Assembly: GCF_006345805.1 (NCBI RefSeq)
Contig: NW_021834649.1
Coordinates: forward strand, 1 to 48,133
Origin: Octopus sinensis
Lineage: Eukaryota
DNA length: 48,133 nt
Direction of reading: 5' to 3'
Below, piece by piece: positions 4,860-41,830 of the stretch. Position numbers and translations under genes: made by a program. Within the stretch, counting starts at the first letter, position 1, and each line of letters starts with the position of its first letter. The notes under the pieces were generated by a model. That model was not told the origin of the DNA, ran no database searches, and was given only the letters and a program-made list of their open reading frames with translations.

Positions 4860-5243
4860 TAGGCGCAGTTTACCAACCACATGGTTCCAGGTTCAGTCCC
4901 ACTGCGTGGCACCTTGGGCAAGTATCTTCTACTATAGCCCCGGGCTGACCAAAGCCTTGTGAGTGGATTTGGTAGACGGAAACTGAAAGAAGCCCGTCGT
5001 ATATATGTATTTATATATATATATATATGCGTGGGTGTGTTTGTGTGTCTGTGTTTGTCCCCGTAGCATTGCTTGACAACCGATGCTGGTGTGTTTACGT
5101 CCCCGTCACTTAGCGGTTCGGCAAAAAGAGACCGATAGAATAAGTACTGGGCTTACAAAAGAATAAGTCCCGTGGTCGAGTTGCTCGACTTAAAGGCGGT
5201 GCTCCAGCATGGCCACAGTCAAATGACTGAAACAAGTAAAAGA
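4860..5243 (+). mobile_element. SINE family A, near full length
   Basis: Same head, (TA)n and tail as 1362-1757, with a small deletion in the head. Confidence 0.88.
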
Positions 5244-5569
5244 GTATATATATATGCTTGTTGTTCCCTCACCTGCGTGTGTATGTGTGTGTGTGTGTGT
5301 GTGGGGGGGGTGTACAGGAAGGGCTTCATGCAGTTTCCCTCTACGAAATCCTCTCGCCTGCCCACGGTGCCATCACTCAGTTGAGACCGAACTCAATCTT
5401 CTCACATACGCCGGGCTTCTTTCCAGTTTCCGCCTATCAAATCCACTCACAAGGCTTTGGTCGGCCCCCAAAGGCATCGCCAAGCAGTGAGATCGAACTC
5501 GTAACCATGTGACTGAAAAGCAAACATCTTCTCAGCGACGCCCGGACGCAATCATAGTCAAAACATATA

Positions 5570-6104
5570 TATTTCTTTACTGCCCACAAGGGGCCAAACA
5601 CAGAGGGGACAAACAAGGACAGACAAAGGGGTTAAGTCGATTACATCGACCCCAGTACGAAACTGGTACTTATTTAATCGACCCCGAAAGGATGAAAGGC
5701 AAAGTCGACCTCGGCGAAATTTGAACTCAGAACGTAGCGGCAGACGAAATACCTATTTCTTTACTACCCACAAGGGGCTAAACACAGAGGGGACAAACAA
5801 GGACAGTCAAAGGGATTAAGTCGATTATATCGACCCCAGTGCGTAACTGGTACTTAATTTATCGACCCCGAAAGGATGAAAGGCAAAGTCGACCTCGACG
5901 GAATTTGCATAGTCAGGACATATATTTAAAGAAAAAGGGTTCCTTACCTATTTCTTTACTACCCACAAGGGGCTAAACATAGAGGGGACAAACAAGGACA
6001 GACAAAGGGGTTAAGTCTTTTACATCGATCCCCAGTACGAAACTGGTACTTTATTCATCGACCCCGAAAGGATGAAAGGCAAAGTCGACCTCGGCGGAAT
6101 TTGC
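5570..6104 (-). mobile_element. Tandem array (~3 units) of head-truncated SINE family B
   Basis: Repeated CCCACAAGGGG...CGAAAGGATGAAAGGCAAAGTCGACCTC units running up to the Rho exon donor region. Confidence 0.9.
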
Positions 6105-6144
6105 AATAGTCAGGACATATATTCAAAGAAAAAGGGTTCCTTAC

Positions 6145-6283
6145 CGTTAAAACTATCGTAAAATGTTGGTACATAATCCGCACTGTATCCTTTCGTTGTA
6201 TAATTAAGGAGCATCGAAGTCTTTCCTACGGCTCCATCGCCGACTACCACGCACCTGATGGTGCGTGGATTCGAACCCACCAT
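6145..6283 (-). CDS. First coding exon of a Rho-family small GTPase (RhoU/RhoV- or Cdc42/RhoQ-related); downstream exons not found in window
   Basis: [46 protein letters not shown] contains the P-loop GDGAVGKT and switch I YVPT. ATG context GAGATGG; phase-1 donor AACG|GTAAGG at 6144. A strong acceptor (CTGAC branch, long pyrimidine tract, CACAG) at 6463-6464 defines a 318-nt exon, 6145-6462. Confidence 0.9.
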
Positions 6284-6498
6284 CTCGTAACGCCAGGTAT
6301 CGAGGGTAAAATGAACGAGACACGGTTCACGTTGTATCCGTCTGGGTATGAATGGATGAATGAATGAATGAGGAGATGGCTGGTTGGCTGGTTGGGCGGG
6401 TGGGTGGCTGGTTGGTTGGTTGGTTGGTGATAGCGTCGTTAAGCGAATGAGGTTGGGTTTAGCTGTGGCGAAAGGAGGAAGGGGGAGAATAAGAGTGT

Positions 6499-6499
<1 letters not shown>

Positions 6500-6530
<31 letters not shown>

Positions 6531-8110: not shown

Positions 8111-8157
8111 AAAATCACGTGCACACACACACACACATACATACATATACATATATA

Positions 8158-8321
8158 CGACGGGCTTCTTTAAGTTTCCGTCTACCAAATCCACTCACAA
8201 GGCATTGGTCGGCCCGAGTCTATAGTAGAAGACACTTGCCCAAGATGCCACGCAGTGGGACTGAACCCGGGACCATGTGGTTGGTTAGCAAGCTACTTAC
8301 CACACAGCCACTCCTGCGCCT
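8158..8321 (-). mobile_element. SINE family A head
   Basis: CGACGGGCTTCTTT...CAGCCACTCCTGCGCCT is the reverse complement of the head module. Confidence 0.88.
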
Positions 8322-10680: not shown

Positions 10681-10849
10681 CAACAGCAACAACAGTCGCA
10701 GTAATAACGGAAAGAAAAACATCTTGCACAGGAACGAAGGACAGGGCATGGTCGGACTTTATATGCAGTGTTTTGGTGTCATACCTGTAAGCCGGTAACT
10801 ATACATCAATATATACATCAAGTCTGTAACGTTTGTACGCCTGTACGTA

Positions 10850-11522
10850 TAATTTATACATATATATATATACAAATATACAAATATATATATATATTAT
10901 ATATATATATATATATGTAAATACAAGCATCCATTCATCCATCCATACATATATACATACATACGTACATACATACGTACGTACGTACATACATACGTAA
11001 TACATACATACGTACATAGATACATACATACATACATACATACGTACATACATACATAACATACGTACATACATACATACATACATACATACATACATAC
11101 ATACGTACATACATACATACGTACATACATACATACGTACGTACATACATACATACCACGTATATACATACATACGTACGTACATACGTATGTACGTACA
11201 TACATACATACGTACATAGATACGTACATACATACATACATACATACATACGTACATACATACGTACATACATACACACATACATACACACATACATACA
11301 CATACATACATACACACACATAGACACACACATACATACATACATACATACATACATACATACATACATACATACATACGTACATACATACATACGTACA
11401 TACACACACATACATACATACATACACATGTATATACATACATACGTACGTACATACATACAAATATCTATACACACACAAACACTTCCAAATACCATAT
11501 ATGAATAGGATATAAATACAAA

Positions 11523-11558
<36 letters not shown>

Positions 11559-11600
11559 AACGCACACACACACATAAACGCACACACACACACACACACA
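10850..11600. repeat. (TA)n/(TACA)n/(CA)n microsatellite block
   Basis: Visible directly; it explains the YVCM-type minus-strand ORFs. Confidence 0.97.
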
Positions 11601-14600
11601 CATCCCTCCGCCTCATCTTCACCCCCTCCACACACAACACTGTTCCCTCCAACTCCCCCGAAGAAGACTCTTCCTCCCCTCCCTTCTCACTCCATCCCCC
11701 CGAACCGCAGAAGCACCCCGCACCACAACCCGGCTGCATCACATTGCGCCGTTGCGGGCTGCAATTGCAGGTGCACCGCCTTGCAGCACTGCACCGTCCC
11801 ACAGCGCTACGTGCTACGCCGCTCCAGGCACCGACACAGCAACTCCCCGTGCCACGCGACACGGCCCTGCACCGCATCGCGGAACCACTGCACGGCACGA
11901 TACTGCACCGGATCACACTGTACCGCCGCAAACAAATGCACTTCAGTGCACCACGGTAGTGCACATCATAATACACCGTACTACACTTCAAAACACTGTA
12001 ATACACTAAATAGCACTGTACTATACCTCGACGAACCATACAACACTGCACCTAAACTCGCGGCGCAGTGTCACACTACAAAATCCCACTGTGCACCACA
12101 CTGCAACGCATCAAATCGCACCCAGCTACGTTGCACTGCGCCGCAACACATCCCACTTGAATACACCACCCGACACAACACTGTCCCATACTACAGGAGA
12201 CCAAGTTCTCGCGCGGTATACAACAACACCTCATACTTCATCACGAACTGTAGCCACCTGCATTACACCACACCAAACTACATCACAGGCGGCAAGGCCA
12301 TACCTGCCTCCGCATCTGACTCCGCCGCAAAGTACATCTCCACACCTGCCGCCTCACCGTGGCGTGCGAAACCAAACCGCAGTAAACCGCCAGAGTTTTT
12401 GCAGCTCAACTCCACGCCGCGCACCTCTGCGTCGCAACACACTCCACAAGACCAAAGTACATCACAGCGTGCTAAGTTGCATAAAAGTACACCAGAGTAC
12501 GCCACACTGCAGAGTGCGTCGCAGCGTGTCACATCGCGTCGAAGTACAACACAGCGTGCGAAACCACTTCCAAGCACACCAGAGTACGCCACACCACGAA
12601 GTACATCGCAGCGTGTCGCATCACTTCAAAGTACATCACAAAGAACCAAGTCACATCAGAGTGCATCAAAGTACGCCAAACCACAAGGTACATCACAGCG
12701 TGCCAAAGCACATCAAAGTGCATCAAAGTACTCCACCTCGAACCAAAGTGCATCTCAGGACGAGACACCGCACCAAGATACATCCCAGTACGAGACACCG
12801 CACCAAAGTACACACCAGTACGTCTCCCTACACCGCCCCAAAGTAGAGTACATCCTCACCTACAAAACAACAGCACCACAGGCTGCACGCTATCGTAACG
12901 TCACACAGTATATCAAACCGAATCGTCCAACCGTACACTACGCCACTCCATCGTACCATACCACTCCAACGTACCATACCACTCCGAGTCATTCCAATTT
13001 ATACTGCATCGATCCACACAGCACTGCAGCAGCGAATCGCACACTTCACTATATCACTCAGCAGTACACGCCATCGCAACAGACCAACCAACACAACACT
13101 ACACTAACCTACAACGCACCACTCCAAACTGCACCGCAGTACACTGCATCGCAACAGACCAACCGACCCAACACTACGCTAACCTACCTCGCACCACTCC
13201 AAACTACACCGCAATACACTGCATCGCAACAGACCAAACGACCCAACACTACACTAACCTACATTGCACCACTCCAAACTGCACCGCAATACACTGCAAC
13301 ACAACAGACCAAACGACACAACACTACACTAACCTACATTGCACCACTCCAAACTGCACCGCAGTACACTGCATCGCAACAGACCAAACGGCACAACACT
13401 ACAGTAACCTACCTCGCACCACTCCAAACTACACCGCAATACACTGCATCGCAACAGACCAAACGACCCAACACTACACTAACCTACATTGCACCACTCC
13501 AAACTGCACCGCAATACACTGCAACACAACAGACCAAACGACACAACACTACACTAACCTACATTGCACCACTCCAAACTGCACCGCAGTACACTGCATC
13601 GCAACAGACCAAACGGCACAACACTACAGTAACCTACCTCGCACCACTCCAAACTACACCGCAATACACTGCATCGCAACAGACCAAACAATACAACACT
13701 ACAGTAACCTACCTCACACCACTCCAAACACCACCGCAATACACTGCATCGCAACAGACCAAACAGCACAACACTACAGTAACCTACCTCGCACCACTCC
13801 AAACACCACCGCAATACACTGCATCGCAACAGACCAAACAACACAACACTACAGTAACCTACCTCGCACCACTCCAAACACCACCGCAATACACTGCATC
13901 GCAACAGACCAAACAACACAACACTACAGTAACCTACCTCGCACCACTCCAAACACCACCGCAATACACTGCATCGCAGTACACTGCATCGCAACAGACC
14001 AAACAACACAGCACTACACTAACTTACACTGCACCACTCCAAACTTCACCGCAATACACTTCATCGCAACAGACCAAACAACAAGTAAGTTACACCACAC
14101 TACCCCAAAACACACCGCATTGCAGTGCACCACTCCATAGCACAACTACACTCCATCAAACAGTGCCATCCCACGCTACACCTCTTACCCTACACTATAT
14201 CCCTGCGTACCACACTCTGTACCACCATCCTCTGTATTACTACACTGCGCCAAACAACACCACCCTAAGCGAAACTACATCGCTCCACACTACAGCAGAC
14301 TCCTCCACACTATATTCCCACTCCACTCCACTCTACAACCCCTCATACTTCACTTCCCCGCACCACACTTACTTGCACTACACCTCACTGCACCACGCAC
14401 CGCCTCACTGCACGAGACCACATCCTCTTGTGCCAGACCACAGTGCGCTGCCGCAGTACACCACTCTACAGCCAGGTGCACTACACAGCAGCGCACCTCA
14501 GTACACTACCTTGCAATATACCACACCACTCCAAACCACTCTCAATTACGCCGCACCCCAAACAACCACACCAAGCAACCCGGCACCCCTGTGGACCACA

Positions 14601-17207
14601 TCGCCCAACAGTGCCACTGCGGTACCCACGGCCACACCAGACTACTTTACATCAGCGCAGACCGTACCAAGCCACACTCCGTTGCCGCACCCTGAACTGT
14701 ATCAAGCTGTACCACAAAGTACCACACCCCGTCACACTGAAGGACAACGTGCCACCCCGCGTTCAGCCAAGAAGACCCTCACAACACCACGTTACACTAC
14801 TGCACTAGCTCCAACCACAACAAAGTACGTTGCCCCACAACAAACCGTGCTTCGGTATAGCACACCACACAGCACCAAAACCACAAGCCGCAGCGTACTT
14901 TACCGTACCAAATTACCCCAAAGTACGACATATAACACTAAAGTACAGCAAAGCAAGCCTTACTACTCTGGACCACATCTAGCTACATTGCAAAGCACTA
15001 CATCACATCGCGTCACACCCCACGAAACTAAACTAAGCCCCACTGTACTAGAGTCATCAGCAGTAGAGTCCCCTCCATTAGAATCAATCCCAGCAGAGTC
15101 CGTAACATTAGAGTCCCCTGCGTTACAATCAATCCCAGCAGAGTCCGTAACATTAGAGTCCCCTGCGTTACAATCAATCCCAGCAGAGTCCGTAACATTA
15201 GAGTCCCCTGCGTTACAATCAATCCCAGCAGAGACCGTAACATTAGAGTCCCCTGCGTTACAATCAATCCCAGCAGAGTCCATAACATTAGAGTCCCCTG
15301 CGTTACAATCGATCCCAGCAGAGTCCGTAACATTAGAGTCCCCTGCATTAGAATCAATCCCAGCAGAGTCCGTAACATTAGAGTCCCCTGCATTAGAATC
15401 AATCCCAGCAGAGTCCATAACATTAGAGTCCCCTGCGTTACAATCAATCCCGGCAGAGTCCGTAACATTAGAGTCCCCTGCGTTACAATCAATCCCAGCA
15501 GAGTCCGTAACATTAGAGTCCCCTGCGTTACAATCAATCCCAGCAGAGACCGTAACATTAGAGTCCCCTGCGTTACAATCAATCCCAGCAGAGTCCATAA
15601 CATTAGAGTCCCCTGCGTTACAATCGATCCCAGCAGAGTCCGTAACATTAGAGTCCCCTGCATTAGAATCAATCCCAGCAGAGTCCGTAACATTAGAGTC
15701 CCCTGCATTAGAATCAATCCCAGCAGAGTCCATAACATTAGAGTCCCCTGCGTTACAATCAATCCCGGCAGAGTCCGTAACATTAGAGTCCCCTGCGTTA
15801 CAATCAATCCCAGCAGAGTCCGTAACATTAGAGTCCCCTGCGTTACAATCAATCCCAGCAGAGTCCGTAACATTAGAGTCCCCTGCATTAGAATCCATCC
15901 CAGAAGAGTTCATAACATTAAAGCCCCATGCATTAGAATCCATCCCAGAAGAGTTCATAACACCAGAGTCTACTGCATTAGACTCTACCCTTATAGAGCC
16001 CAACACACTTGAACCCACCCAACAAGAGTTCACAGCTCTAGAGTCAAACCCACAAGAGTCCAACACACTAGAGTCTACAGCGCCAGAGGTGAACCCACAA
16101 GAGTCTAACACAGTAGAGTCCATAGTACTAGCTAACACCACATCAAACTGCACAAAACCTCTCCCTACCAAACTTTACCCAATCGACCCCCACCCCACCA
16201 AACCGCACTTCACGACACAGCACTCTACCCCAGGATGCTCCACCTTCACAACAGTTTACGAAGCCACACCGCATTACAAGACACTACGTCACATCTCGCT
16301 TAATCGCCCGTACCACCACTCTACTACACCTCATCTCCACACGAGCCCCTGCACCGCACCCGACTACCTCACCCTGCTCCACATCTCCCCACACTGCCCC
16401 TCACCCTACTACACGACTCCGCAATATACAACGCCGCCGACCGCATATTACACCAGCCCGCATCAAAAGCTCAACTGCTCCTACCCATATTTCGCTTCAA
16501 CACCTTGCATCCCACACCCCTGTGTCGCACCATCTCCCTGTGCCCCACGCCATCGCATTGTGTCCCCTTGCACCCCGTCCAACCGTGTAACACTCCCTGC
16601 AATTTACTGCGCCACTCCATACAAAGCTAAATCGCAGTGCACCGCGTTACCTGCTCTTAACCGCAGCACATCACACTGTGCTATACTACATCACAGCGCG
16701 GCACAGCGCACTACGTTGCCGACACTTCCTTGCGTCCCACAGCACCCCAGTGCGCCACAACACTCCACCAACTGCTCTGTACTGCGCAGCACTGCATTAT
16801 CTTCATTGTGCACCGTCAAACCGCACCCCACTCACCTGAACCACCCTTCACCGTACCAATCACACTGCATCATACCACCACGTTACCAGACGTCACAGTT
16901 TCCTGCACCGCACCAAACAACGCTGCACCGCACAGCACAACGCCTCCACCTTCCATCTGTACAAACTACACTGCGCTGCACTGCAGCCCACACAGCTGTA
17001 ACACGCAGTAGGGATCTTTGCTGCACATCGCCACACATCACTGCACCAGTAACACGCTGTGTCACACCTCCACGCACTTGCACTGTCTATTTTTCGCATT
17101 ACGTCCTACGTCACACTGCACTAGATTTCACTGAAGAACCCAGCGGCGTCACGCCTCATCGCACAATTCACACGCCACCCGGCTCTAACCATGGCTTCGG
17201 TGAATGA
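11505..17207 (+). CDS. Putative giant exon/ORF (1,900 codons, no Met) encoding a Thr/Pro/Ser/His/Tyr/Gln-rich, mucin-like repeat protein
   Basis: One frame is open from the TGA at 11502-11504 to the TGA at 17205-17207. The other plus frames reach at most 251 aa in the ORF track. Repeat periods are 75, 45 and 15 nt, and variation within repeats is often synonymous (GCG/GCA, TCA/TCG, CCA/CCG). The track's initial M is a TTG. Confidence 0.65.
13063..14084 (+). repeat. 75-nt coding tandem repeat (~14 copies; QYTASQQTKRHNTTLTYIAPLQTAP)
   Basis: ACACTGCA recurs at 13141, 13216, 13291 and onward. A 3-unit block is duplicated (13216-13440 vs 13441-13665), and there is one 15-nt QYTAS duplication near 13965-13990. 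Confidence 0.95.
15068..15960 (+). repeat. 45-nt coding tandem repeat (~20 copies; ESVTLESPALQSIPA) with a 315-nt higher-order repeat
   Basis: Unit GAGTCCGTAACATTAGAGTCCCCTGCGTTACAATCAATCCCAGCA; the variant GAGACC recurs at 15232 and 15547. Confidence 0.95.
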
Positions 17208-18411
17208 TGAACAAAACCTGTTTAAGGGTATGAACGAGGTGAAGACATCCCTCGGTAGTTTTATCACTACGGAAAGCGTTAATTCAGATAACACTGGCTA
17301 CCAAAAATCCGTATCTGAGATCCACCCATCACAGAAGGAAACGCCGCATGAAGATGTACCTGTTGCTAGCAAGAATGATAATGTACGCGCTGGTGGGGCT
17401 ACGACAAACATTGGTGAACACACCGAAGAAATAAATGTCACTTACCCCCACATCAGTCTGCAGCCGGCAAAGAAGAAACTGTCATCGCTCGAGTCACAGC
17501 GAGTGATGAACGTGTATATTGACATGGTGGAAAGAGCCGTGTTGGTAGGTATGTTTCCATTTGTCTTGGAGAATTTGCACCTCTTCGAGGACGCGTTCGA
17601 CGATCACTTGAAAGCGTGTTTTAAGAACCACGCCGACCTCCAGGCATCCTACACGGAAACGCGGCGTGAGTTTCTCACGTTTTGCCGCAGAATGCGTCGG
17701 TCCGCCCAGCCGCAGCCGAAAACTATAGACCTTACTGCCGAAGCTGAGAAAATGAAAAAGCTTTCGAATTGTGATTTTGAGGGTGAAGAAGAGGAAGAGA
17801 GTACCGTTGTTATGACTAGTGAAGATGACACTGATATTCACTATAGGCATTCCACAAGTGATGATGTAGATGGTACGGACATGTACCATGATGGCGATGA
17901 TGAATATGATGCCAGCATTGGGAAAGCCAGGAAAAAAAATAGCTACGACAGCCATAGCAACTGGATGCTTAAGGAAGATGAGGATGGGGATTACCCTTTG
18001 CAATCCTTATCGTCGAGTGCTTCGCCCTACAGCGTCGACTCCTCGGTGGAAATGAGGGAGAGCAGCGACGAAAGCCTGAGGGCTCACGAACTCGGCCGCC
18101 AGCTGTCGAACCTCGCCGACCGGCTGGGCAACTCCTGTAAGAATATACTGCGCGCGGTAAACGAGAACACGACGGCCGAGAAGGAGATACTGAGCTACAG
18201 GGACAACATGTCGCCGGAGCTGCAGGAGTTTGTGAGCAAACTCAACGAGCTGAAGAGCATTTTGAGAATCCGCCTGCTGACCACCCCTCTCGAAGAAAAG
18301 GAGCAAGATGAATACCTGAAAGAAACGGCAGAGAAAGCGGTTCAGAACAAGAAGCTTATTGAAAAACTTGAGAAAGAACTGGCAGAGGTAACAGCGGCCA
18401 AGGACGAGCAG
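17191..18411 (+). CDS. IQCD: Dynein regulatory complex protein 10 / IQ domain-containing protein D, coding exon 1
   Basis: AACCATGG Kozak context. KKLSSLESQRVMNVYIDMVERAVLV and LNELKSILRIRLLTTPLEEKEQ match the DRC10 coiled-coil segments as I recall them. Phase-0 donor CAG|GTATTA at 18412. Confidence 0.88.
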
Positions 18412-18435
18412 GTATTACGTATGGGTTGTTTATTA

Positions 18436-19430
18436 TTATCGCTATGTTCAGAGTTCAAATTCCGCCGATGTCGATTTTGCCTTTATTCCTATCGGGGTCG
18501 ATTAAATAAGTACCAGTTACGCACTGGGGTCGATATAATCGACTTAATCCCTTTGTCTGTCCTTGTTTGTCCTCTCTGTGTTTAGCCCCTTGTTGGTAGT
18601 GAAGAAATAGGTATTTTGTCTGCCACTACGTTCTAAGTTCAAATTCACCCGAGGTCGACTTTGCCTTTCATCCTTTCGGGGTCGATTAAATAAGTACCAG
18701 TTACACACTGCGGTCGATATAATCGACTTAATCCCTTTGTCTGTCCTTGTTTGTCCTCTCTGTGTTTAGCCCCTTGTTGGTAGTGAAGAAATAGGTATTT
18801 TGTCTGCCACTACGTTCTGAGTTCAAATTCACCCGAGGTCAACTTTGCCTTTCATCCTTTCGGGGTCGATTTAATAAGTACCAGTTACGCACTGGGGTCG
18901 ATATAATCGACTTAATCCCTTTGTCTGTCCTTGTTTGTCCTCTCTATGTTTAGACCCCTGTGGGCAATAAATCCGTTTGTCTGTCCTTGTTTGTCCTCTC
19001 TGTGTTTAGCCCCTTGTAGGTAGTAGAGAAATAGGTATTTTGTCTGCCGCTATGCTCTGTGTTCAAATACCGCCCAGGTCGACTTTGCCTTTCATCCTTT
19101 CGGGGCTCGATTAAATAAGTACCAGTTACACACTGGGGTCGATGTAATCGACTTATCCCCTTTGTCTGTCCTTGTTTGTCCCCTCTGTGTTTAGCCCCTT
19201 GTGGGTAGTAAAGAAATAAGTATTCGTCTGCCACTACGTTCTGAGTTCAAATTCCGCCGAGGTCGACTTTGCCTTTCATCCTTTCGGGGTCGACTTTACC
19301 TTTCATCCTTTCGGGGTCGATTAAATAAGTACCAGTTACGCACTGGGGTCGATATAATCGACATAATCCCTTTGTCTGTCCTTGTTTGTCCCCTCTGTGT
19401 TTAGCCCCTTGTGGGTAGTAAAGAAATAGG
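18436..19430 (+). mobile_element. Tandem array (~6 units, ~165 bp) of head-truncated SINE family B
   Basis: Units TACGTTCTGAGTTCAAATT...GCCCCTTGTGGGTAGTAAAGAAATAG joined through GGTATTT; starts ~25 bp after the exon donor. Confidence 0.92.
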
Positions 19431-20169: not shown

Positions 20170-20403
20170 GTGAAACAGAAGACTATGAAAATACGCAAAC
20201 TACAAAACGATATCCAGCAGATTGACAAATCGGCCGTAGAGAATATCCGTCGTGTGAAGGCCGAAGCGGACAACACCATCGCTACCGAGATGAAAGGCAG
20301 TGAGAGCAAGACCCAGGCCGTCTACCAGGAACTGGTCCACGCCAAAGCGAATCTTGCAAACCAAACGACAGCGCACAGAGAGAACGAACAAGATTTACGA
20401 AGG
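20170..20403 (+). CDS. IQCD: DRC10/IQCD coding exon 2
   Basis: TTTTTCTAG|GTG...AGG|GTAAGA; 78 codons, VKQKTMKIRKLQNDIQQID...RENEQDLRR coiled coil, phase 0/0. Confidence 0.92.
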
Positions 20404-26016: not shown

Positions 26017-26858
26017 TATCTATCTATCTATCTCTCTATCTACCGATCTTTCTATCTGTCTATCTATCTATCTATCTATGACGACAAGAGAAGCACACCA
26101 AGCTAATCCGTCATCAACCAAAAACCACTCAACACCTGAAAAAATACCAACACCACCAACAACAGCAAGAACCAAAGGAACAGAAAAACAAAGAAAACAC
26201 AAAAAAACTGACCCCCCATCCCTTATACCGCACTCAACACACACAAACACTCAACAACCAACAACAACGAAAACAGCAACACAACCACTTACACAGACAT
26301 ACATAGAAGCCTACAACATACCCCTACCCCCTTCTGATTCCTCAGAAATTTCGTCGGAAGACGAAACCAGTGAGGAATGGCAAATAGCTACAAAAAGAAG
26401 GAAAATAAAGAGCAGAAACACAACCAAACCAAATGCAAACACGAACAAAGCAGGGGGAAATACATCTCCCGAAGACATTTCAAAACCCAACGCAAACAAC
26501 AGCCACACCAACACCACAAAAATATATACAGCAAACATGCTCACAGCTATAGACACCAAAAACACAAATTTGATGGAATACATCCAATCAAAACAAACAT
26601 AACAGAAGATGACATAAAAACAAACAATCACCCATACACAACACCACCAGACCACATCAAAATATTACACATCTCCAAAAGTCTGCACCACACACTCAAA
26701 GGCATTTTCCCCAGTGCGGTTGGTAAATGCCAAAAATATCTCACAAAGAAACTGTACTGGGATCTCCTCGAGGACAAACCAAAGGAGGAGAAAGCAAAAA
26801 CTTTCGAGCAGTAAGTAACCCTCTGTTCCTTTCACTTGTATTCTAATTCATTAGGATT

Positions 26859-27810
26859 ATGATCAAGATTGGTTGTGTAAATGCGCGTGGCTTGGGGTCC
26901 CCTTGGAAACAAGGGTACCTCTTAAACGACATAAAGTCACATAAGTTAGAAATCATAGCCATAAGTGAGACTAGACTCCACAATCCGCGGGCCCTAAAGA
27001 CCATGTGTGGCGGACAGTTCAACATTTATTTTTCCCCCTGTCTGCCGAGAATGGGCGGTAGTGGCACCGCGGTACTTTTTCGCAAGAGTCTAGATCTCAA
27101 AGTAAGGACAATATTCGTAGACCTGGAGGGTAGACTGGTCGTCCTGGATGTCGACGGCAGCAATGGGTGCGCTTTTCGACTCGTATCAGTCTACGCACCA
27201 CCCTTAACAGCTTGGGCGGATTTCTTTCAACGTCTAGAAGTATTCTTGGGAACGTCTCGTCCTTTACTCTTAGTGGGGGATTGGAATGCTACCTTGGACA
27301 CGCATGTAGACTACGTGGGTAGAGATAGGAATAGACGGGGATGCAAATGCCTCAGAGACCTGCTCAGACACTTTCAACTGTCTGACAGGTTCCAACTAGA
27401 CCACCCGAATGCGCCAACGTGGACATGGAGCAACTGCATCGGGTCGTCGAGATCGTATCTAGATAGGATACTGTGTAGGACAGTAGACAGAGATAGCATA
27501 GGATGTCCACAATTCCACATAGTCAGCTACACGGATCACAAACTTGTGACATGTACGCTAGACTTAGGTAAAACACTTAGGCAGGGTCCCGGATACTGGA
27601 AACTAAACGCGTCTTTCCCATCGAGACAGGTTTTCAGAGACCGGATTAGCACACTAGTAAAGAGGGCTTTGACGGGAGCCATCATCAACAACAAATGGTG
27701 GTTTGCCCTCAAGAGAGCAGTAAAAGCAGAAGCGATTAGGTACAGCAAAGCACTAGCCATAGATAGAAATAGAGTAGAGGGTGAGCTAGTTAAGAAGCTA
27801 GAAGCGGCAT
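26859..27810 (+). pseudogene. ORF2 apurinic-like endonuclease domain of the Tx1-like LINE
   Basis: NARGL, SETRL, VYAP, GDWN, YLDRI and SYTDH motifs; frameshifted near 27810. Confidence 0.93.
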
Positions 27811-28005
27811 CGCATCCGACGTTTTGGCGGCGAGGTTGGCCCTCGAACAACACTTCAACGCCAAACAGGAAGGATGTGCTGTCAAAGCTAGGATACGTGC
27901 TCTAAGGAACGAAGGTGTTGGAGCTGCGAGAGAGGCCTGGGTGGCAGAGGCGCAACAGGGCAACAAAGCCACCATTCGGTCCCTGGTAGATGAACAGGGC
28001 GCGAA

Positions 28006-30230
28006 TTGCTCGAGCCAAGTAAAATGTGTGAGGCCTTTCAGCAGCATTTTGCCCGACTGTTCGGGACGAGTGGAGGGCAAGAACGTAGGGTGGACTTCAG
28101 TGCCTACCTACATAGCCTACCACGACTCTCGACAAGAAAGGCAGGGTGCTGTGAAGGTGCCATCACGGTGGCGGAAGTGCAGGACGCGATGGCAGAATGC
28201 TCGAGGGACAAATCATCGGGTTTGGATGGTCTGCCCTACGAGCTTTACAATTGTATGCCAGACTTGTTTGGAGATCTCTTGGTGGCGGTGTACTGCAACT
28301 GGCAGCAAAACGGGAGCATTCCTGGTTTTGTGAGCCGAGGAGCCGTAACACTGCTGAAGAAAGATCGAAATAAGGGAAATGTAATAGATAACTTTAGGCC
28401 CATCACTCTGCTCAATGCAGACTTGAAAATTTTGGCCAAGGTGCTAGCCAAGAGGTTGGCGCTTGTCATCGAGAAACTGGTCGACAAGGCGCAAACATGC
28501 GCCGTGCCAGGCCGGACCATCCATGACAACCTCCACCTAATGCACTACATCATAGACAGGGTAGTTAACGAACCTGGCATGGGTGGGGCGCTGATCAATT
28601 TGGATCAATCGAAAGCTTTTGATAGGGTAGACCATCGATACTTGCAGGCGGTCCTCAGAGCGGCTGGCTTCGGTCCCGTCTTCCGCGGCTGGATAGCTGC
28701 TTTGTACAGAGGCATCCGTTCAGTAATTCACGTGAATGGACATCTATCGAGACCCTTCGACATCGCACGTTCGGTCCGTCAAGGATGCCCCCTCTCGTCG
28801 CTTCTATACGTATTGACTCTCGAGCCATTATTGCGGAAGCTGGCAACTTTGAGGGGTATCCAGCGAGAATGGGGATGCGGGACGAGTGTGTCTGCATACG
28901 CGGACGACGTCACCGTCATAGTGTCTAGCCACGAGCACATCGAGCAGGTCGGCGAGACACTGAAAAACTACGAAGCGGTGACAGGAGCGAAAATCAACCG
29001 GGAAAAGTCAGTGGGCTTGCGACTAGGCACCTGGAGAAGCAAGCCCATGCTGTCCACCAGCGCCTCCGTCGTGGGACGCTGGACCGACGGCCCGGTTGAG
29101 TTGCTCGGGGTCTGGTTTGGTCCGGACCTCCAAGTGGAGAAGAACTGGAACGAGATAACGAGTAGGGTGATCACTCTCGCCTGGCAATGGGCCGAGAGGA
29201 AACTGTCCCTAAAAGGTCGGGCGGAGGTGGCGAACACGTACATCGCGTCCGTCATCTACTACCGCCTGACCGTCGTACCTTGTCCCGAACCTACCATCAC
29301 CAAACTACAACGCATTCTCTTTCGCTTCTTGTGGAAAGGATGCATCCCGATGGTCAGGCGATCCATTTGCTGTCAACACCCGTTAAAAGGAGGGCTGGGC
29401 ATGCCGTGGTTGATGATGCGCAGACACGCGCTGAGACTGCGACATCTCTGGCTTTATGTAGACGACGGTGAACAGGTGTGGTCGCCGTTTGTGAGGCACG
29501 CTTTCCCGCAGCTCGTCTCCATGACCGAACTGCAGTCGTGGATCAAAAAGAGGCCGAGGAAGGGCGAATGGCACCGCGAGTGTCGCGTTGCTCTCAAGCA
29601 ACTCTGCCGTCCTGGGTCGACCTTGAGCGACTTCAACACAACCAAAGCATCCTATAGGGGATTAATGGAGGGGAGGTACGACGACGAGCTCGGGGCGAAC
29701 CTGGACGTCGACGAGGAGTACCTGACCCGCCTGTTCAGGACGACTTTCGGGCCAGGGCCCATGGACAACTTCCAGAGATCCCTGGCCTGGCAGTGCTACC
29801 AAGAAGCGCTACCCGTTCAGGATAAGCTCTACAGACACGGCTCGAGAAACACGGGGCCGACCTGCCCGAGATGCGGTCAGAGCAACGAAACCGTTCTGCA
29901 CGCACTCGTGCAGTGTCCAACAATTTCCGACCTGTGGGCTTGTGTCGAACAATGCTGTCACGTGTGGACGAGTCGGTTTATCAGCTGAGTCTATCGTCAA
30001 TATTGTCACGCCTCCTTCCTTCAAACGGGAAGGAAGAGCTATTTTCATCATCCTTGTGGCTATGGCGCAAGAAGTATCTGGTGGACGCGCGTCTGAAAGG
30101 ATTGGAGACAAACACTTTCCTCTCTGGTCAATCTCTCATCAACTTCTTCAAGTACCACTTGAAAAGGAAAGTGAGAGTAGAGAGGCAAGTTTTGTCTAGC
30201 GAATGTTTTAAAAAAAGATGGGTGATGTAG
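28006..30230 (+). pseudogene. ORF2 reverse transcriptase and C-terminal domains of the Tx1-like LINE
   Basis: GLDG, FRPITLLN.D.KI, DQSKAFDRV, RQGCPLS, AYADDV and LGVWF motifs; frameshifts near 28005, 29950 and 30080. Confidence 0.95.
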
Positions 30231-31348: not shown

Positions 31349-31420
31349 CGAAAGTTCAAGGCAGAAACTGAAGTTGAAAATTGGATACAAAAATACGACC
31401 AAGACATGGGACAACTGCAG
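31349..31420 (+). CDS. IQCD: DRC10/IQCD coding exon 3
   Basis: TTTTCTATCAACAG|CGA...CAG|GTAATC; 24 codons, RKFKAETEVENWIQKYDQDMGQLQ, the hallmark DRC10 segment. Confidence 0.95.
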
Positions 31421-31425
31421 GTAAT

Positions 31426-32093
31426 CCGCCACCACCACCACCACCACAAATGCCACCACCACTACCATCGCCACCACCACCACTACTGCGACAACCACCA
31501 CCATCACCACCACCGCCGCCACCACCACCACCATCGCCACCACCACTACAACCGCCACCACTACTGCCATCACTACCGCCACCACCACCACCACCACTAC
31601 CACCACCCTGCCACCACCACCATCACTACCGCCGACACCACCACTACTGCCACAACCACAACCACCACCACCACCACCATCGCCGCCGACGCCACCATCA
31701 CCACCACCACCACCACCACCACCACCACTACCATCACCACCACCACTGCCACCACCACCACCACCACCACCACCACCATCGCCGCCACCACCACTAACAC
31801 CACCACCACCACCACTACCATCACCACCACCACTGCCACCACCACCACCACCACCACCACCACCATCGCCGCCACCACCACTAACACCACCACTGCCACC
31901 ACCACCACCACCACACCCCCCATCGCCGCCACCACCACTAACACCACCACTACCATCACCACCACCATTAACACCACCACCATCACAACCACCGCTGTCA
32001 CCATCGCTGCCGCCGCCGCCACCGCCACCACCGCCAGCACCAGCATTCCCCCCACCACCAGTACCACTCCCACCACCACCATCACTACCGCCA

Positions 32094-32149
<56 letters not shown>

Positions 32150-32360
32150 ACCACCACTTCTACCACTAATACTACTCCTACCACCACCATAGCCGCTTTC
32201 ACAGTACTCACAAATGTTGCTCTCCTATGACTTACTGCTCTCTCCTCCTTTGTTCTACCTGCCCTAAATTCTTCTGCTCTCCTTTTGTCTCCGTCCATCC
32301 CCCCTACCACCTCTTCCACCTCCACCTCCTCCTCCTCCTCCTCCACCTCCTCCTCCTCTC
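31426..32360. repeat. (CAC/CCA)n trinucleotide low-complexity tract and (CCT)n
   Basis: Visible directly; gives poly-H/T/P/V ORFs in all frames. Confidence 0.95.
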
Positions 32361-40624: not shown

Positions 40625-41830
40625 AGACCAAGTTTAGTAAGCAGCAAGAGGTACTCAGCACACATCCCTCTGGGTAGGTGGCCTGCTCAACCTGTAGGAA
40701 AGGTACAGGTAGAAACTCCATAAGATGCACCCAATGTAAGTTATGGACACATAAGAGGTGCAGCAACATTAAAGGGAAATTAACAGATAAAATAGCTTTC
40801 ATGTGCGGCAGATGCACAGGGACAATAGACACAACAGACACTCAGAAAACAGATTCCATCACACTCCAGGGAGAGAAACTAGAAGTAGTTGATAGTTTCC
40901 GCTACCTGGGTGACCAAGTTAGTAGCGGAGGTGGATGCACAGAGAGTATCACCACTAGAATACGAATAGCCTGGGCAAGTTCAGAAAGCTCCTACCCTAC
41001 TGGCACAAAAGGTCTCTCCCTCAGAGCAAAAGGTAGATTGTATGATGCATGTGTGCGAACTGCCATGCTTCACGGTAATGAAACATGGGCTGTGACTGCA
41101 GAGGCATGCGTAGACTTGAAAGAAATGAAGCTAGCATGATCCGCTGGATGTGTAGTGTCAGTGTGCACGCAAGACAGAGTGTAAGCATCCTGAGAGAAAT
41201 GCTGGATATAAGAAGCATCAGATGTGGTGTGCAAGAGCGACGCTTGCAATGGAATGGTCATGTGCTGCGGATGGATGAAGAGAGATGTGTGAAGAAGTGC
41301 CACTCCCAAACAGTTGAAGGTATCAGGGGGAGAGTAGACCCAGGAAGACATGGGATGAGGTGGTCAAGCATGAGCTCAGAGCATTGGGCCTCACTGAGGC
41401 AATGGCGAAGGACCGAGATCTCTGGAGATATGCTGTGACTACAAAGACCCGGGCTGCTTTCTGCAGCAATTCCACCTACCCCCTACCCATTCTAAGTACC
41501 CCGGATCCCCAAAGTACCCTGGATACCCCAAAGTACCCCGATCCCATCCCCAAAGTACCCTGGACCTCGTTGCCCCCGTGCCGCTGACACGTTAAAATGC
41601 TCGAACCGATCGTGACGATGCCGGACCCTCCGCCCCTGTGCAGGTGGCACGTAAAAAGCACCCATCCACTCACGGAGTGGTTGGCGTTAGGAAGGGCATC
41701 CAGCCGTAGAACTCTGCCAGATTCAGACTGGAGCCTGGAGCGGCCCCTGGCTTCCCAGACCCGGTCGAACCGTCCAACCCGTGCTAGCGCGGAAAGCGGA
41801 CGTTAAACGATGATGATGATGATGATGATG
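40625..41830 (+). mobile_element. RTE-clade LINE 3' part with PHD-like finger, 3' UTR and (GAT)n tail
   Basis: CSTCRKGTGRNSIRCTQCKLWTHKRC...CGRC, FRYLGD, RIRIAW, LHGNETW, RRLQWNGHV; frameshifted. Confidence 0.9.

Follow-up and report, generated by a model that had tools for sequence, protein, structure and literature searches.

The window analysed here, a 48,133-nt stretch of the Octopus sinensis genome (assembly GCF_006345805.1, contig NW_021834649.1, positions 1 to 48,133 of the forward strand), contains a giant open reading frame (ORF) of nominally 1,900 codons on the plus strand (11505-17207). This ORF is not a free-standing exon, as it runs directly into the start of a gene encoding a protein similar to dynein regulatory complex protein 10 (DRC10). 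We have high confidence that it is a real, selected feature and more than a product of chance. Its frame has stayed open in three or more octopus lineages, a spliced RNA contig carries its final 850 nt, AUGs have been purged from it, and its RNA is G-poor and weakly structured. We propose that this leader and the DRC10-like gene form a dicistronic mRNA, with a lineage-restricted and very probably translated upstream cistron, a proposal that in our judgement has about an even chance of being correct. The upstream cistron is predicted from sequence, with a candidate start, probable translation and a possible microsatellite origin.

Extent of the open reading frame

The ORF ends with a TGA at 17205-17207, and the nearest in-frame stop on its 5' side is a TGA at 11502. 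A listing of stops and ATGs reproduced the frame that had been described in the original prediction, a model's reading of the DNA letters: 1,900 codons, no in-frame ATG, and no other open frame on the plus strand. Within 11505-17207, the remaining plus-strand frames contained 84 and 30 stops, and each minus-strand frame contained 70-123. When only the non-repetitive parts were considered, no stop was found in the ORF frame versus about 50 in the other two plus-strand frames. The few ATGs said to occur in any frame upstream of DRC10 were the same three that we found, at 11936, 15928 and 16235, after which the next are at 17191 (the DRC10 start) and 17204.

At its 5' end, the frame begins with ~100 nt (11505-11602, nominally the first ~33 codons) of simple sequence read as THTH..., corresponding to an (AC)n microsatellite detected by Tandem Repeats Finder (TRF) at 11526-11602 (plus strand). 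A (CATA)n microsatellite, also detected by TRF, lies 5' of the ORF (10928-11462, plus strand). Based on the frame, selection and composition analyses, the body of the conserved ATG-free ORF, that is, a proposed upstream cistron of ~1,830 codons, was placed at 11711-17207 on the plus strand.

Simulated sequences were built on the k-mer content of the ORF region itself (C 38%, A 31%, T 17%, G 14%), with 300 sequences for each Markov order from 1 to 6. In these, the longest open run averaged 195-323 codons, with a maximum of 815. As no composition-matched sequence exceeded 815 codons, versus the 1,900 observed, a chance origin, which the original prediction had itself raised as a counter-explanation, fails.

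Junction with the DRC10-like gene

The first coding exon of the DRC10-like gene is located at 17191-18411 (plus strand) and matched, with 100% identity, a 604-aa protein described as dynein regulatory complex protein 10-like of O. sinensis (P0001; contig VCDQ01005722.1). The donor GT of this exon is at 18412, the next exon begins at 20170, and the gene ends at about 36881. DRC10-like is a conserved axonemal gene, associated with cilia and the sperm tail. Its ATG lies 14 nt 5' of the TGA of the giant ORF, in the +1 frame relative to the latter, and a comparison of the ORFs of three species revealed a 17-nt overlap of the two reading frames (17191-17207, plus strand). The geometry of this overlap was identical in the three species, in which the upstream frame ends with ..HGFGE*, ..HGYGE* and ..HDFGE*. 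The giant ORF was also considered as an in-frame N-terminal extension of DRC10; this was ruled out, since the ATG at 17191 is in the +1 frame in all three species.

The DRC10 start has the context aaccATGg in O. sinensis and Octopus bimaculoides and gatcATGa in the third species. With an A at -3 in all three and a G at +4 in two of them, the start context of this second cistron counts as strong in each. The last ~100 nt before the ATG (17091-17190) aligned without gaps among the three octopus species, with conservation extending to synonymous sites of the giant ORF. About 85 nt 5' of the ATG, the three-species alignment contains the half palindrome TACGTCA (17107-17113, plus strand), which we take to be a site resembling the cAMP response element (CRE). 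The block around it may act as a proximal promoter or as a translational control element. The overlap with DRC10, the presence of the 3' end of the ORF on a DRC10 transcript contig and the strength and meaning of the ATG scarcity (see below) had been missed in the original prediction.

Two types of mobile elements were observed in or near the DRC10-like gene. A 184-nt element resembling a short interspersed nuclear element (SINE) is present as 2.8 tandem copies at 18452-18959, ~40 nt 3' of the exon 1 donor, with dispersed copies at 66-232, 1368-1759, 4868-5246 and 8123-8315 that match several places in the O. bimaculoides locus. A retrotransposon of the long interspersed nuclear element (LINE) type is located in an intron (26078-29988, plus strand). 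Judging from the translations only, its ORFs look largely intact and encode, in order, a 174-aa ORF1-like, a 348-aa endonuclease-like and a 660-aa reverse-transcriptase-like product.

Conservation and transcription in other octopuses

The orthologous locus of O. bimaculoides (L001) aligned at 78-87% DNA identity, and homology was measurable from 11635 onward, where an assembly gap of that genome ends. The same frame was open over ~1,500 codons, interrupted only by runs of N, and ended with the shared overlap (...SNHGYGE*). Frameshifts in orthologues had been put forward as evidence that would speak against a coding frame; none was found in O. bimaculoides.

A third octopus is represented by a 2,710-nt Logan contig (L002) from SRR3401912, an octopus meta-transcriptome run (PMC11662614), which encodes a DRC10 protein of 607 aa (P0003; 59% identity over exon 1). 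Its coding sequence is uninterrupted, which indicates that the contig represents spliced RNA. The contig includes 850 nt 5' of the DRC10 ATG, contiguous with the coding sequence and open for 288 codons up to the contig end, with 0, 7 and 8 stops in the three frames, and it terminates in ...FDHDFGE* with the 17-nt overlap. The 3' end of the ORF (850 nt or more) therefore appears to be carried on the DRC10 mRNA, and it is for this part that transcription of the ORF is documented. The translated leader of the third species had 35-47% identity (pairwise E of 3e-16), with many large in-frame gaps, and its frame was still open where synonymous divergence (dS) exceeds 1. DNA identity between O. sinensis and the third species was 55%, a level at which indel phases are uninterpretable.

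Neither of the two non-octopod DRC10 contigs (L003 and L004) contained a long upstream ORF. Literature searches turned up nothing on this locus and no description of dicistronic genes in octopus.

Selection on the frame

Selection was tested on 1,096 aligned codons of non-array sequence from O. sinensis and O. bimaculoides. None of the 12 internal indels disrupted the frame: 11 were multiples of 3 (3, 18, 12, 15, 30, 30, 18, 3, 12, 18 and 3 nt), and the last was a 14+1 pair lying within 35 nt. Most of them were not multiples of 5 and so did not result from pentamer slippage.

Not a single stop was confined to one of the two species in the ORF frame, whereas frames 1 and 2 had 8 and 25 such stops, respectively. 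When the O. sinensis sequence was mutated neutrally, the number of stops expected in the ORF frame was 12.0 ± 3.5 using the observed substitution spectrum (none of 2,000 runs was without a stop) and 9.6 ± 3.2 using trinucleotide-context rates (none of 400 runs). Frames 1 and 2, which served as controls, agreed with neutrality (6 versus 9.5 and 15 versus 10.4, respectively).

The ratio of nonsynonymous to synonymous divergence (omega; Nei-Gojobori method) was 0.51 for the ORF (0.48-0.67 across four segments), versus 0.81 and 0.91 when the same alignment was read in the other two frames, and 0.18 for DRC10 exon 1. The upstream ORF and DRC10 are thus both under purifying selection. Differences amounted to 15.1%, 13.6% and 18.9% at the first, second and third codon positions, respectively (order 3>1>2; chi-square p = 0.002). 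This pattern has the appearance of a translated sequence that is loosely constrained, and the comparison indicates that the frame is maintained open by selection in octopuses. Coding selection, as originally predicted, was in this way recovered from the purged stops, the 3n indels, the codon-position pattern and an omega of about 0.5.

ATG depletion and structure of the leader

Three ATGs were observed in O. sinensis between 11603 and 17190, versus 42 expected from a first-order Markov model and 24.3 ± 4.1 from codon shuffling; in the three unique segments, 2 were observed and 19 expected. The leader of O. bimaculoides contained 7 (~22 expected by codon shuffling and ~34 by the first-order Markov model) and that of the third species none (~5 expected). 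No in-frame ATG was present in any of the three species, and the depletion, put at about 8-fold or more, held for all three frames. Each of the remaining ATGs is out of frame and starts an upstream ORF (uORF) of just 2-22 codons. The ATG at 11936, the sole leader ATG common to O. sinensis and O. bimaculoides, starts a 7-codon out-of-frame uORF (11936-11959, plus strand) in a weak context (aaacaaATGc), with a stop that is conserved in O. bimaculoides. Out-of-frame stops, in contrast, were not depleted (109 observed versus 107 expected).

We also counted ATGs gained, i.e., present in O. bimaculoides and absent in O. sinensis. Four such gains were found versus 13.0 ± 3.4 expected under context-dependent neutral mutation (P = 0.005) and 15.3 under a simpler model, while eight control triplets ranged from 0.75 to 1.6 times expectation. 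AUGs thus appear, from this comparison, to be removed by selection in all frames, something for which an ordinary coding exon has no need. A conserved, statistically strong depletion in three frames points towards a link, through translation, with the gene that follows.

The predicted folding energy of the leader RNA was -19 kcal/mol per 150 nt, versus -35 to -46 in neighbouring sequence of similar GC content. On the 5' side of the ATG-poor zone, the nearest ATGs are at ~11428 and ~11501, so that a transcript start between there and 11936 would fit.

Pentanucleotide texture and repeat arrays

Nucleotide autocorrelation peaked at lags of 5, 10, 15, 20, 25 and 30 (z of ~5-14). These peaks were present in the arrays and in each of the three "unique" segments, where period 3 was weak, which bears out the degenerate pentamer texture described from the letters alone; the adjoining DRC10 exon gave an ordinary period-3 signal in the same analysis. 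The motif [A/G]CA[A/C/T][C/T] occurred 356 times versus 139 expected, most commonly at spacings of 5, 10, 20 and 15 nt. The 5-nt periodicity was equally strong in the leaders of all three octopus species, including the one at saturating divergence, which suggests that the beat is maintained or regenerated and not merely inherited.

Several tandem arrays (all plus strand) were detected in the ORF by TRF. The first (12453-12822) is composed of 87-nt (29-aa, three copies) and 30-nt repeats rich in S, T, Q, R and K (STSQRAK... units). The second (13061-14083) contains 13.4 copies of a 75-nt (25-aa) unit, QYTASQQTKRHNTTLTYIAPLQTAP; this repeat includes K/R residues, as in HNTTLTYIAPLQTAPQYTASQQTK, and was also found in O. 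bimaculoides. The third (15064-15970) contains 20.2 copies of a 45-nt (15-aa) unit, ESPALQSIPAESVTL, with a higher-order repeat of 315 nt (7 units), identity being 0.966 at lag 315 versus 0.93-0.95 at other multiples of 45. The ESPALQSIPAESVTL 45-mer is expanded only in O. sinensis. In O. bimaculoides, it is the adjacent ESNTLESTALEANPQ 45-mer that has expanded, and repeat comparison revealed ~2 copies of the latter in O. sinensis (15995-16122, plus strand). Smaller arrays of 15, 30 and 45 nt were also present. Overall, about one third of the ORF region consists of young arrays copying a stop-free unit, and array content turns over fast between species, always in frame.

Array copies differed by conservative variants as well as by the synonymous variants that had been noticed earlier among the 45-mers. 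The further claim that all periods are multiples of 15 was valid for 15, 45, 75 and 315 nt; it did not extend to the TRF periods of 87 (the 12453-12822 array), 57 and 18 nt, which are multiples of 3 only, or to two weak rows of 20 nt. Birth from a microsatellite fits the period-5 texture and is a plausible reading of its history.

Predicted protein

The predicted product contains 16.6% T, 12.2% P, 11.1% S, 8.8% A, 8.1% L and 7.6% Q, lacks Met and has hardly any Gly, Asp or Trp. With P, T and S together reaching 39.9%, and 25-aa and 15-aa arrays of about 13 and 20 copies, respectively, it is a repetitive Pro/Thr/Ser-rich product. The designation "mucin-like" matches its composition only, namely the PTS-rich tandem repeats; a Pfam scan of the product revealed none of the flanking mucin domains (VWD, C8, CK, SEA). 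The only Pfam match was to Extensin_1 and was below threshold (27 bits versus a cut-off of 105). Single-sequence AlphaFold2 modelling of the C-terminal 362 aa gave no predicted fold (predicted local distance difference test, pLDDT, of 33), which agrees with disorder and is weak evidence for it.

Homologues were searched for with the complete ORF, with its C-terminal 362 residues and with 12899-14137 translated in frame 2. Among 5.8 billion proteins, only a spurious match to an actinobacterial "PLRSIPL" repeat was found, and among 1.84 billion representatives there were no matches. Homologues are thus absent from these protein searches, yet the "de novo" status given to the ORF in the original prediction stays unproven.

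Candidate start region of the proposed upstream cistron

In a pyrimidine-rich, 76-nt block ending in ...CCGCAG (11635-11710, plus strand), identity between O. sinensis and O. bimaculoides reached 97%, versus ~83% for the rest. From its sequence, this block could be a 3' splice site, an initiator at a transcription start site resembling a terminal oligopyrimidine (TOP) motif, or a region of non-AUG initiation. It includes an in-frame CTG at 11640 with an A at -3, conserved in both species. The CTG at 11640 and an acceptor at 11710 are candidate starts by conjecture, and the upstream cistron would accordingly begin either at a near-cognate codon at ~11640-11710 or at an AUG in an upstream exon. 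A mini-exon (ATG at 10748, donor at 10787) was tried as the first exon and rejected, as its phase does not fit the acceptor at 11710; the orthologous region is an assembly gap.

Existing annotations and neighbouring features

Both octopus annotations place a gene for an uncharacterised protein inside the region: one of 717 aa at 12014-14695 (plus strand) in O. sinensis, and one of 1,122 aa at 1942-9821 of L001 in O. bimaculoides. The 3' ends of both models coincide with stops in another frame. Neither product was recovered in the large protein searches, and the frames were judged from the end coordinates. The O. bimaculoides model starts with a 5-nt "ATGAC|gt" exon in GA-rich simple sequence that is not conserved in O. 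sinensis; it was rejected as a true start and taken to be an ab initio artefact. In our view, both annotations model one and the same ORF poorly, and ATG-dependent gene finders miss or misrepresent it.

On the other side of the ORF, a gene for a small GTPase of the Rho/Ras family lies on the minus strand, with its first coding exon at 6104-6523 (coding part ~6110-6260; 87% conserved with O. bimaculoides). The neighbouring minus-strand gene of O. bimaculoides has Ras, FKBP_C and TPR matches. The GTPase gene is oriented divergently from the unit formed by the giant ORF and DRC10, and the giant ORF fills most of the space between the GTPase and DRC10-like genes.

No Rfam family matched inside the giant ORF. 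On the (CATA)n microsatellite, Rfam returned dozens of microRNA matches (mir-297, mir-466, mir-3149, etc.), far below the gathering score and considered spurious. A scan for bacterial-type promoters and terminators is uninformative for a eukaryote.

A long open frame in simple DNA occurs again at 31406-32230 (plus strand), where a 274-aa ORF with an ATG start encodes His runs followed by Thr/Ala runs on a C-rich strand (GC skew of -0.68); this ORF is probably a microsatellite artefact. Finally, a 153-aa ORF at 40678-41139 (plus strand) looks, from its translation (...RCTGTIDT...LGDQVSSGGG...), like a fragment of a retroelement with zinc-finger and reverse-transcriptase sequence.

Discussion

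Three constraints act on the same stretch of RNA: an open frame, the absence of AUG, and a G-poor, period-5 texture. The open frame and the AUG-free leader, taken together, led us to propose a dicistronic mRNA read by leaky scanning. A minority of ribosomes would initiate the upstream cistron and produce a long, disordered, Pro/Thr/Ser-rich repeat protein. The inefficient non-AUG start would itself make scanning leaky, and the remaining 43S complexes would scan the AUG-free, unstructured leader until the first AUG in a strong context, which is that of DRC10. The 5-nt beat could derive from growth out of pentamer repeats of the [A/G]CA[C/A][C/T] type; such repeats read alike in all frames and without stops, and would have offered a ready-made open frame. 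After repeat growth, only length changes compatible with 15 nt or with 3n would have survived. We hold the leaky-scanning mechanism with moderate confidence. The complete account, in which an AUG-free cistron of 1,830-1,900 codons was born from pentamers, starts at a near-cognate codon and forms an AUG-free leader that is scanned through to DRC10, is tentative, and we consider it possible but rather doubtful.

Several observations weigh against the dicistronic mRNA. No in-frame ATG that could start the upstream cistron was found from the stop at 11502 through 17207, and we know of no precedent for scanning over more than 5 kb. The CRE-like block ~85 nt before the ATG suggests that DRC10 may also, or mainly, use a proximal promoter, in which case scanning through 5.6 kb would be needless. 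Transcript support amounts to 850 nt of leader in one species, on one assembled contig, which an assembler could have produced by merging overlapping transcripts. The pentamer motif itself disfavours TGA (C at motif position 2) and ATG (a pyrimidine after CAT), and the expectations based on shuffling are therefore inflated; the test of ATG gains is cleaner, yet involves only 4 versus 13 events. Finally, dS was 0.285 in the ORF versus 0.715 in the DRC10 exon, which implies that nucleotide-level constraint or period-5 structure acts too; such constraint could contaminate omega, and an array of RNA-binding motifs or ongoing 15n slippage, for example, may underlie the nucleotide pattern.

The strongest alternative is an independent, octopod-specific gene for a repeat protein, with its start in an upstream exon and with a separate promoter for DRC10 lying within the last ~100 nt; tight packing would then account for the 17-nt overlap, and the ATG scarcity would be a by-product of the pentamer motif. 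We consider it unlikely, though a genuine competitor. The pyrimidine tract followed by CAG in the 97%-conserved block at 11635-11710 resembles a 3' splice site, the TACGTCA block is conserved at synonymous sites close to the DRC10 ATG, in both annotations a distinct protein gene is placed within the region, and the motif structure accounts for the TGA shortage and for part of the ATG shortage. However, the 850 nt of ORF on the spliced DRC10 contig form its leader, and the shortfall of ATG gains, with control triplets near expectation, does not fit an ordinary exon, which tolerates out-of-frame ATGs. The annotations are themselves weak predictions, as the 5-nt ATG exon is not conserved and both models end in another frame.

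Alternatively, the leader could act in cis, translation up to the DRC10 start being needed for reinitiation or for the loading or repression of the mRNA, and the peptide itself being functionless. Selection that is very strong against stops and weak on residues (omega of 0.51), the expansion of a different array in each species and the identical stop/start geometry in three species all agree with this. According to PMC11892635, 40S subunits can, after termination, shift back over a short stretch to an AUG, which would allow reinitiation at the overlap. On the other hand, conservation of the TGA follows necessarily from the conserved Asn-Asp/Glu codons of DRC10, and selection for the overlap as such is not required; both the omega of 0.5 and the 3>1>2 pattern also imply some constraint on residues. 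Moreover, reinitiation after very long ORFs is generally inefficient. We regard a purely cis-acting role as improbable.

A programmed +1 frameshift at GAA-UGA, yielding a giant N-terminally extended DRC10, is highly improbable. DRC10 is indeed in the +1 frame, skipping the U of UGA would give GAU/GAA in the DRC10 frame, and both frames are open across the junction in three species; but the DRC10 AUG and its A at -3 are also conserved in the three species, and the site, GAA-UGA-U/A, does not match the antizyme shift site UCC-UGA-U. The last alternative, a degenerate microsatellite or long 5' untranslated region (UTR) whose open frame is a non-coding relic of 15n amplification, without selection for translation, is given next to no likelihood: it draws on the dominance of period 5 over period 3, the young arrays that copy a stop-free unit over about a third of the region, and the lack of a homologue, domain or predicted fold, and is contradicted by the absence of new stops in 1,096 unique codons (9.6-12 expected, with turnover of 8 and 25 in frames 1 and 2), by indels that are all frame-preserving and mostly not multiples of 5, and by a frame still open in a lineage with a dS above 1.

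If the complete account outlined above is correct, no non-AUG ORF known to us would come close to this one in length, the tract crossed by leaky scanning would also be the longest that we know of, and the locus would be a clear example of a giant protein born from a non-triplet microsatellite. If the proposed arrangement holds, scanning ribosomes would tolerate a leader of several kb when it is AUG-free and G-poor, and a pentanucleotide repeat, alike and stop-free in all three frames, might seed a very long coding sequence that selection then maintains without loss of the 5-nt periodicity. AUG-purged dicistronic pairs like stoned/Snapin would also occur in molluscs. By overlaying three separable constraints (period 5, period 3 and no AUG), the locus offers a concrete system for the study of non-AUG initiation and leaky scanning.

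Comparison with known systems

The closest animal parallel is that of the Drosophila stoned (stnA/stnB) and Snapin loci, dicistronic genes that are, according to PMC11892635, the subject of a 2005 J Biol Chem paper (280:27670) by Wall, Phillips and Kelly. These have two conserved ORFs on one nuclear mRNA, as is proposed for the octopus locus, and share with it an AUG-deficient first cistron and a better start context for the second. The octopus locus differs in its far longer first cistron (~1,830-1,900 codons), in its period-5 DNA and in evidence that comes from sequence alone; furthermore, its cistrons overlap by 17 nt, the first without an identified AUG start, whereas those of stoned/Snapin are separated.

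In base composition, the leader recalls the omega sequence of tobacco mosaic virus (TMV) and synthetic (CAA)n leaders, which are G-poor, CA-rich, AUG-free, weakly folded and easily traversed by ribosomes. Those leaders are tens of nt long and are not selected ORFs, whereas the octopus leader is a long selected ORF. The octopus ORF, with its ~40% Pro+Thr+Ser, its in-frame arrays that vary in copy number between species and its lack of a globular domain, also resembles proteins with PTS repeats of the mucin type; it has no flanking mucin domains in the Pfam scan, has a pentanucleotide rather than a 3n repeat substrate, and is physically coupled to an axonemal gene. Growth by tandem duplication has been described for the elongation of de novo ORFs by tandem repeats (PMC12888051), and the octopus ORF resembles fish antifreeze glycoproteins and other repeat-derived genes in this respect.

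According to PMC11892635, both stoned/Snapin and the green-algal bicistrons have an AUG-deficient first cistron with a poor start and reach the second by leaky scanning. In the green algae Chlamydomonas and Auxenochlorella, the same source reports AUG depletion in the 5' UTR, in ORF 1 and between the ORFs, with a weak ORF 1 start and a strong ORF 2 start; AUG depletion and a conserved pair of ORFs are thus features in common with the octopus locus. The algal ORF 1s encode short proteins behind short 5' UTRs, whereas the octopus leader is 5.6 kb long, repetitive and found in an animal.

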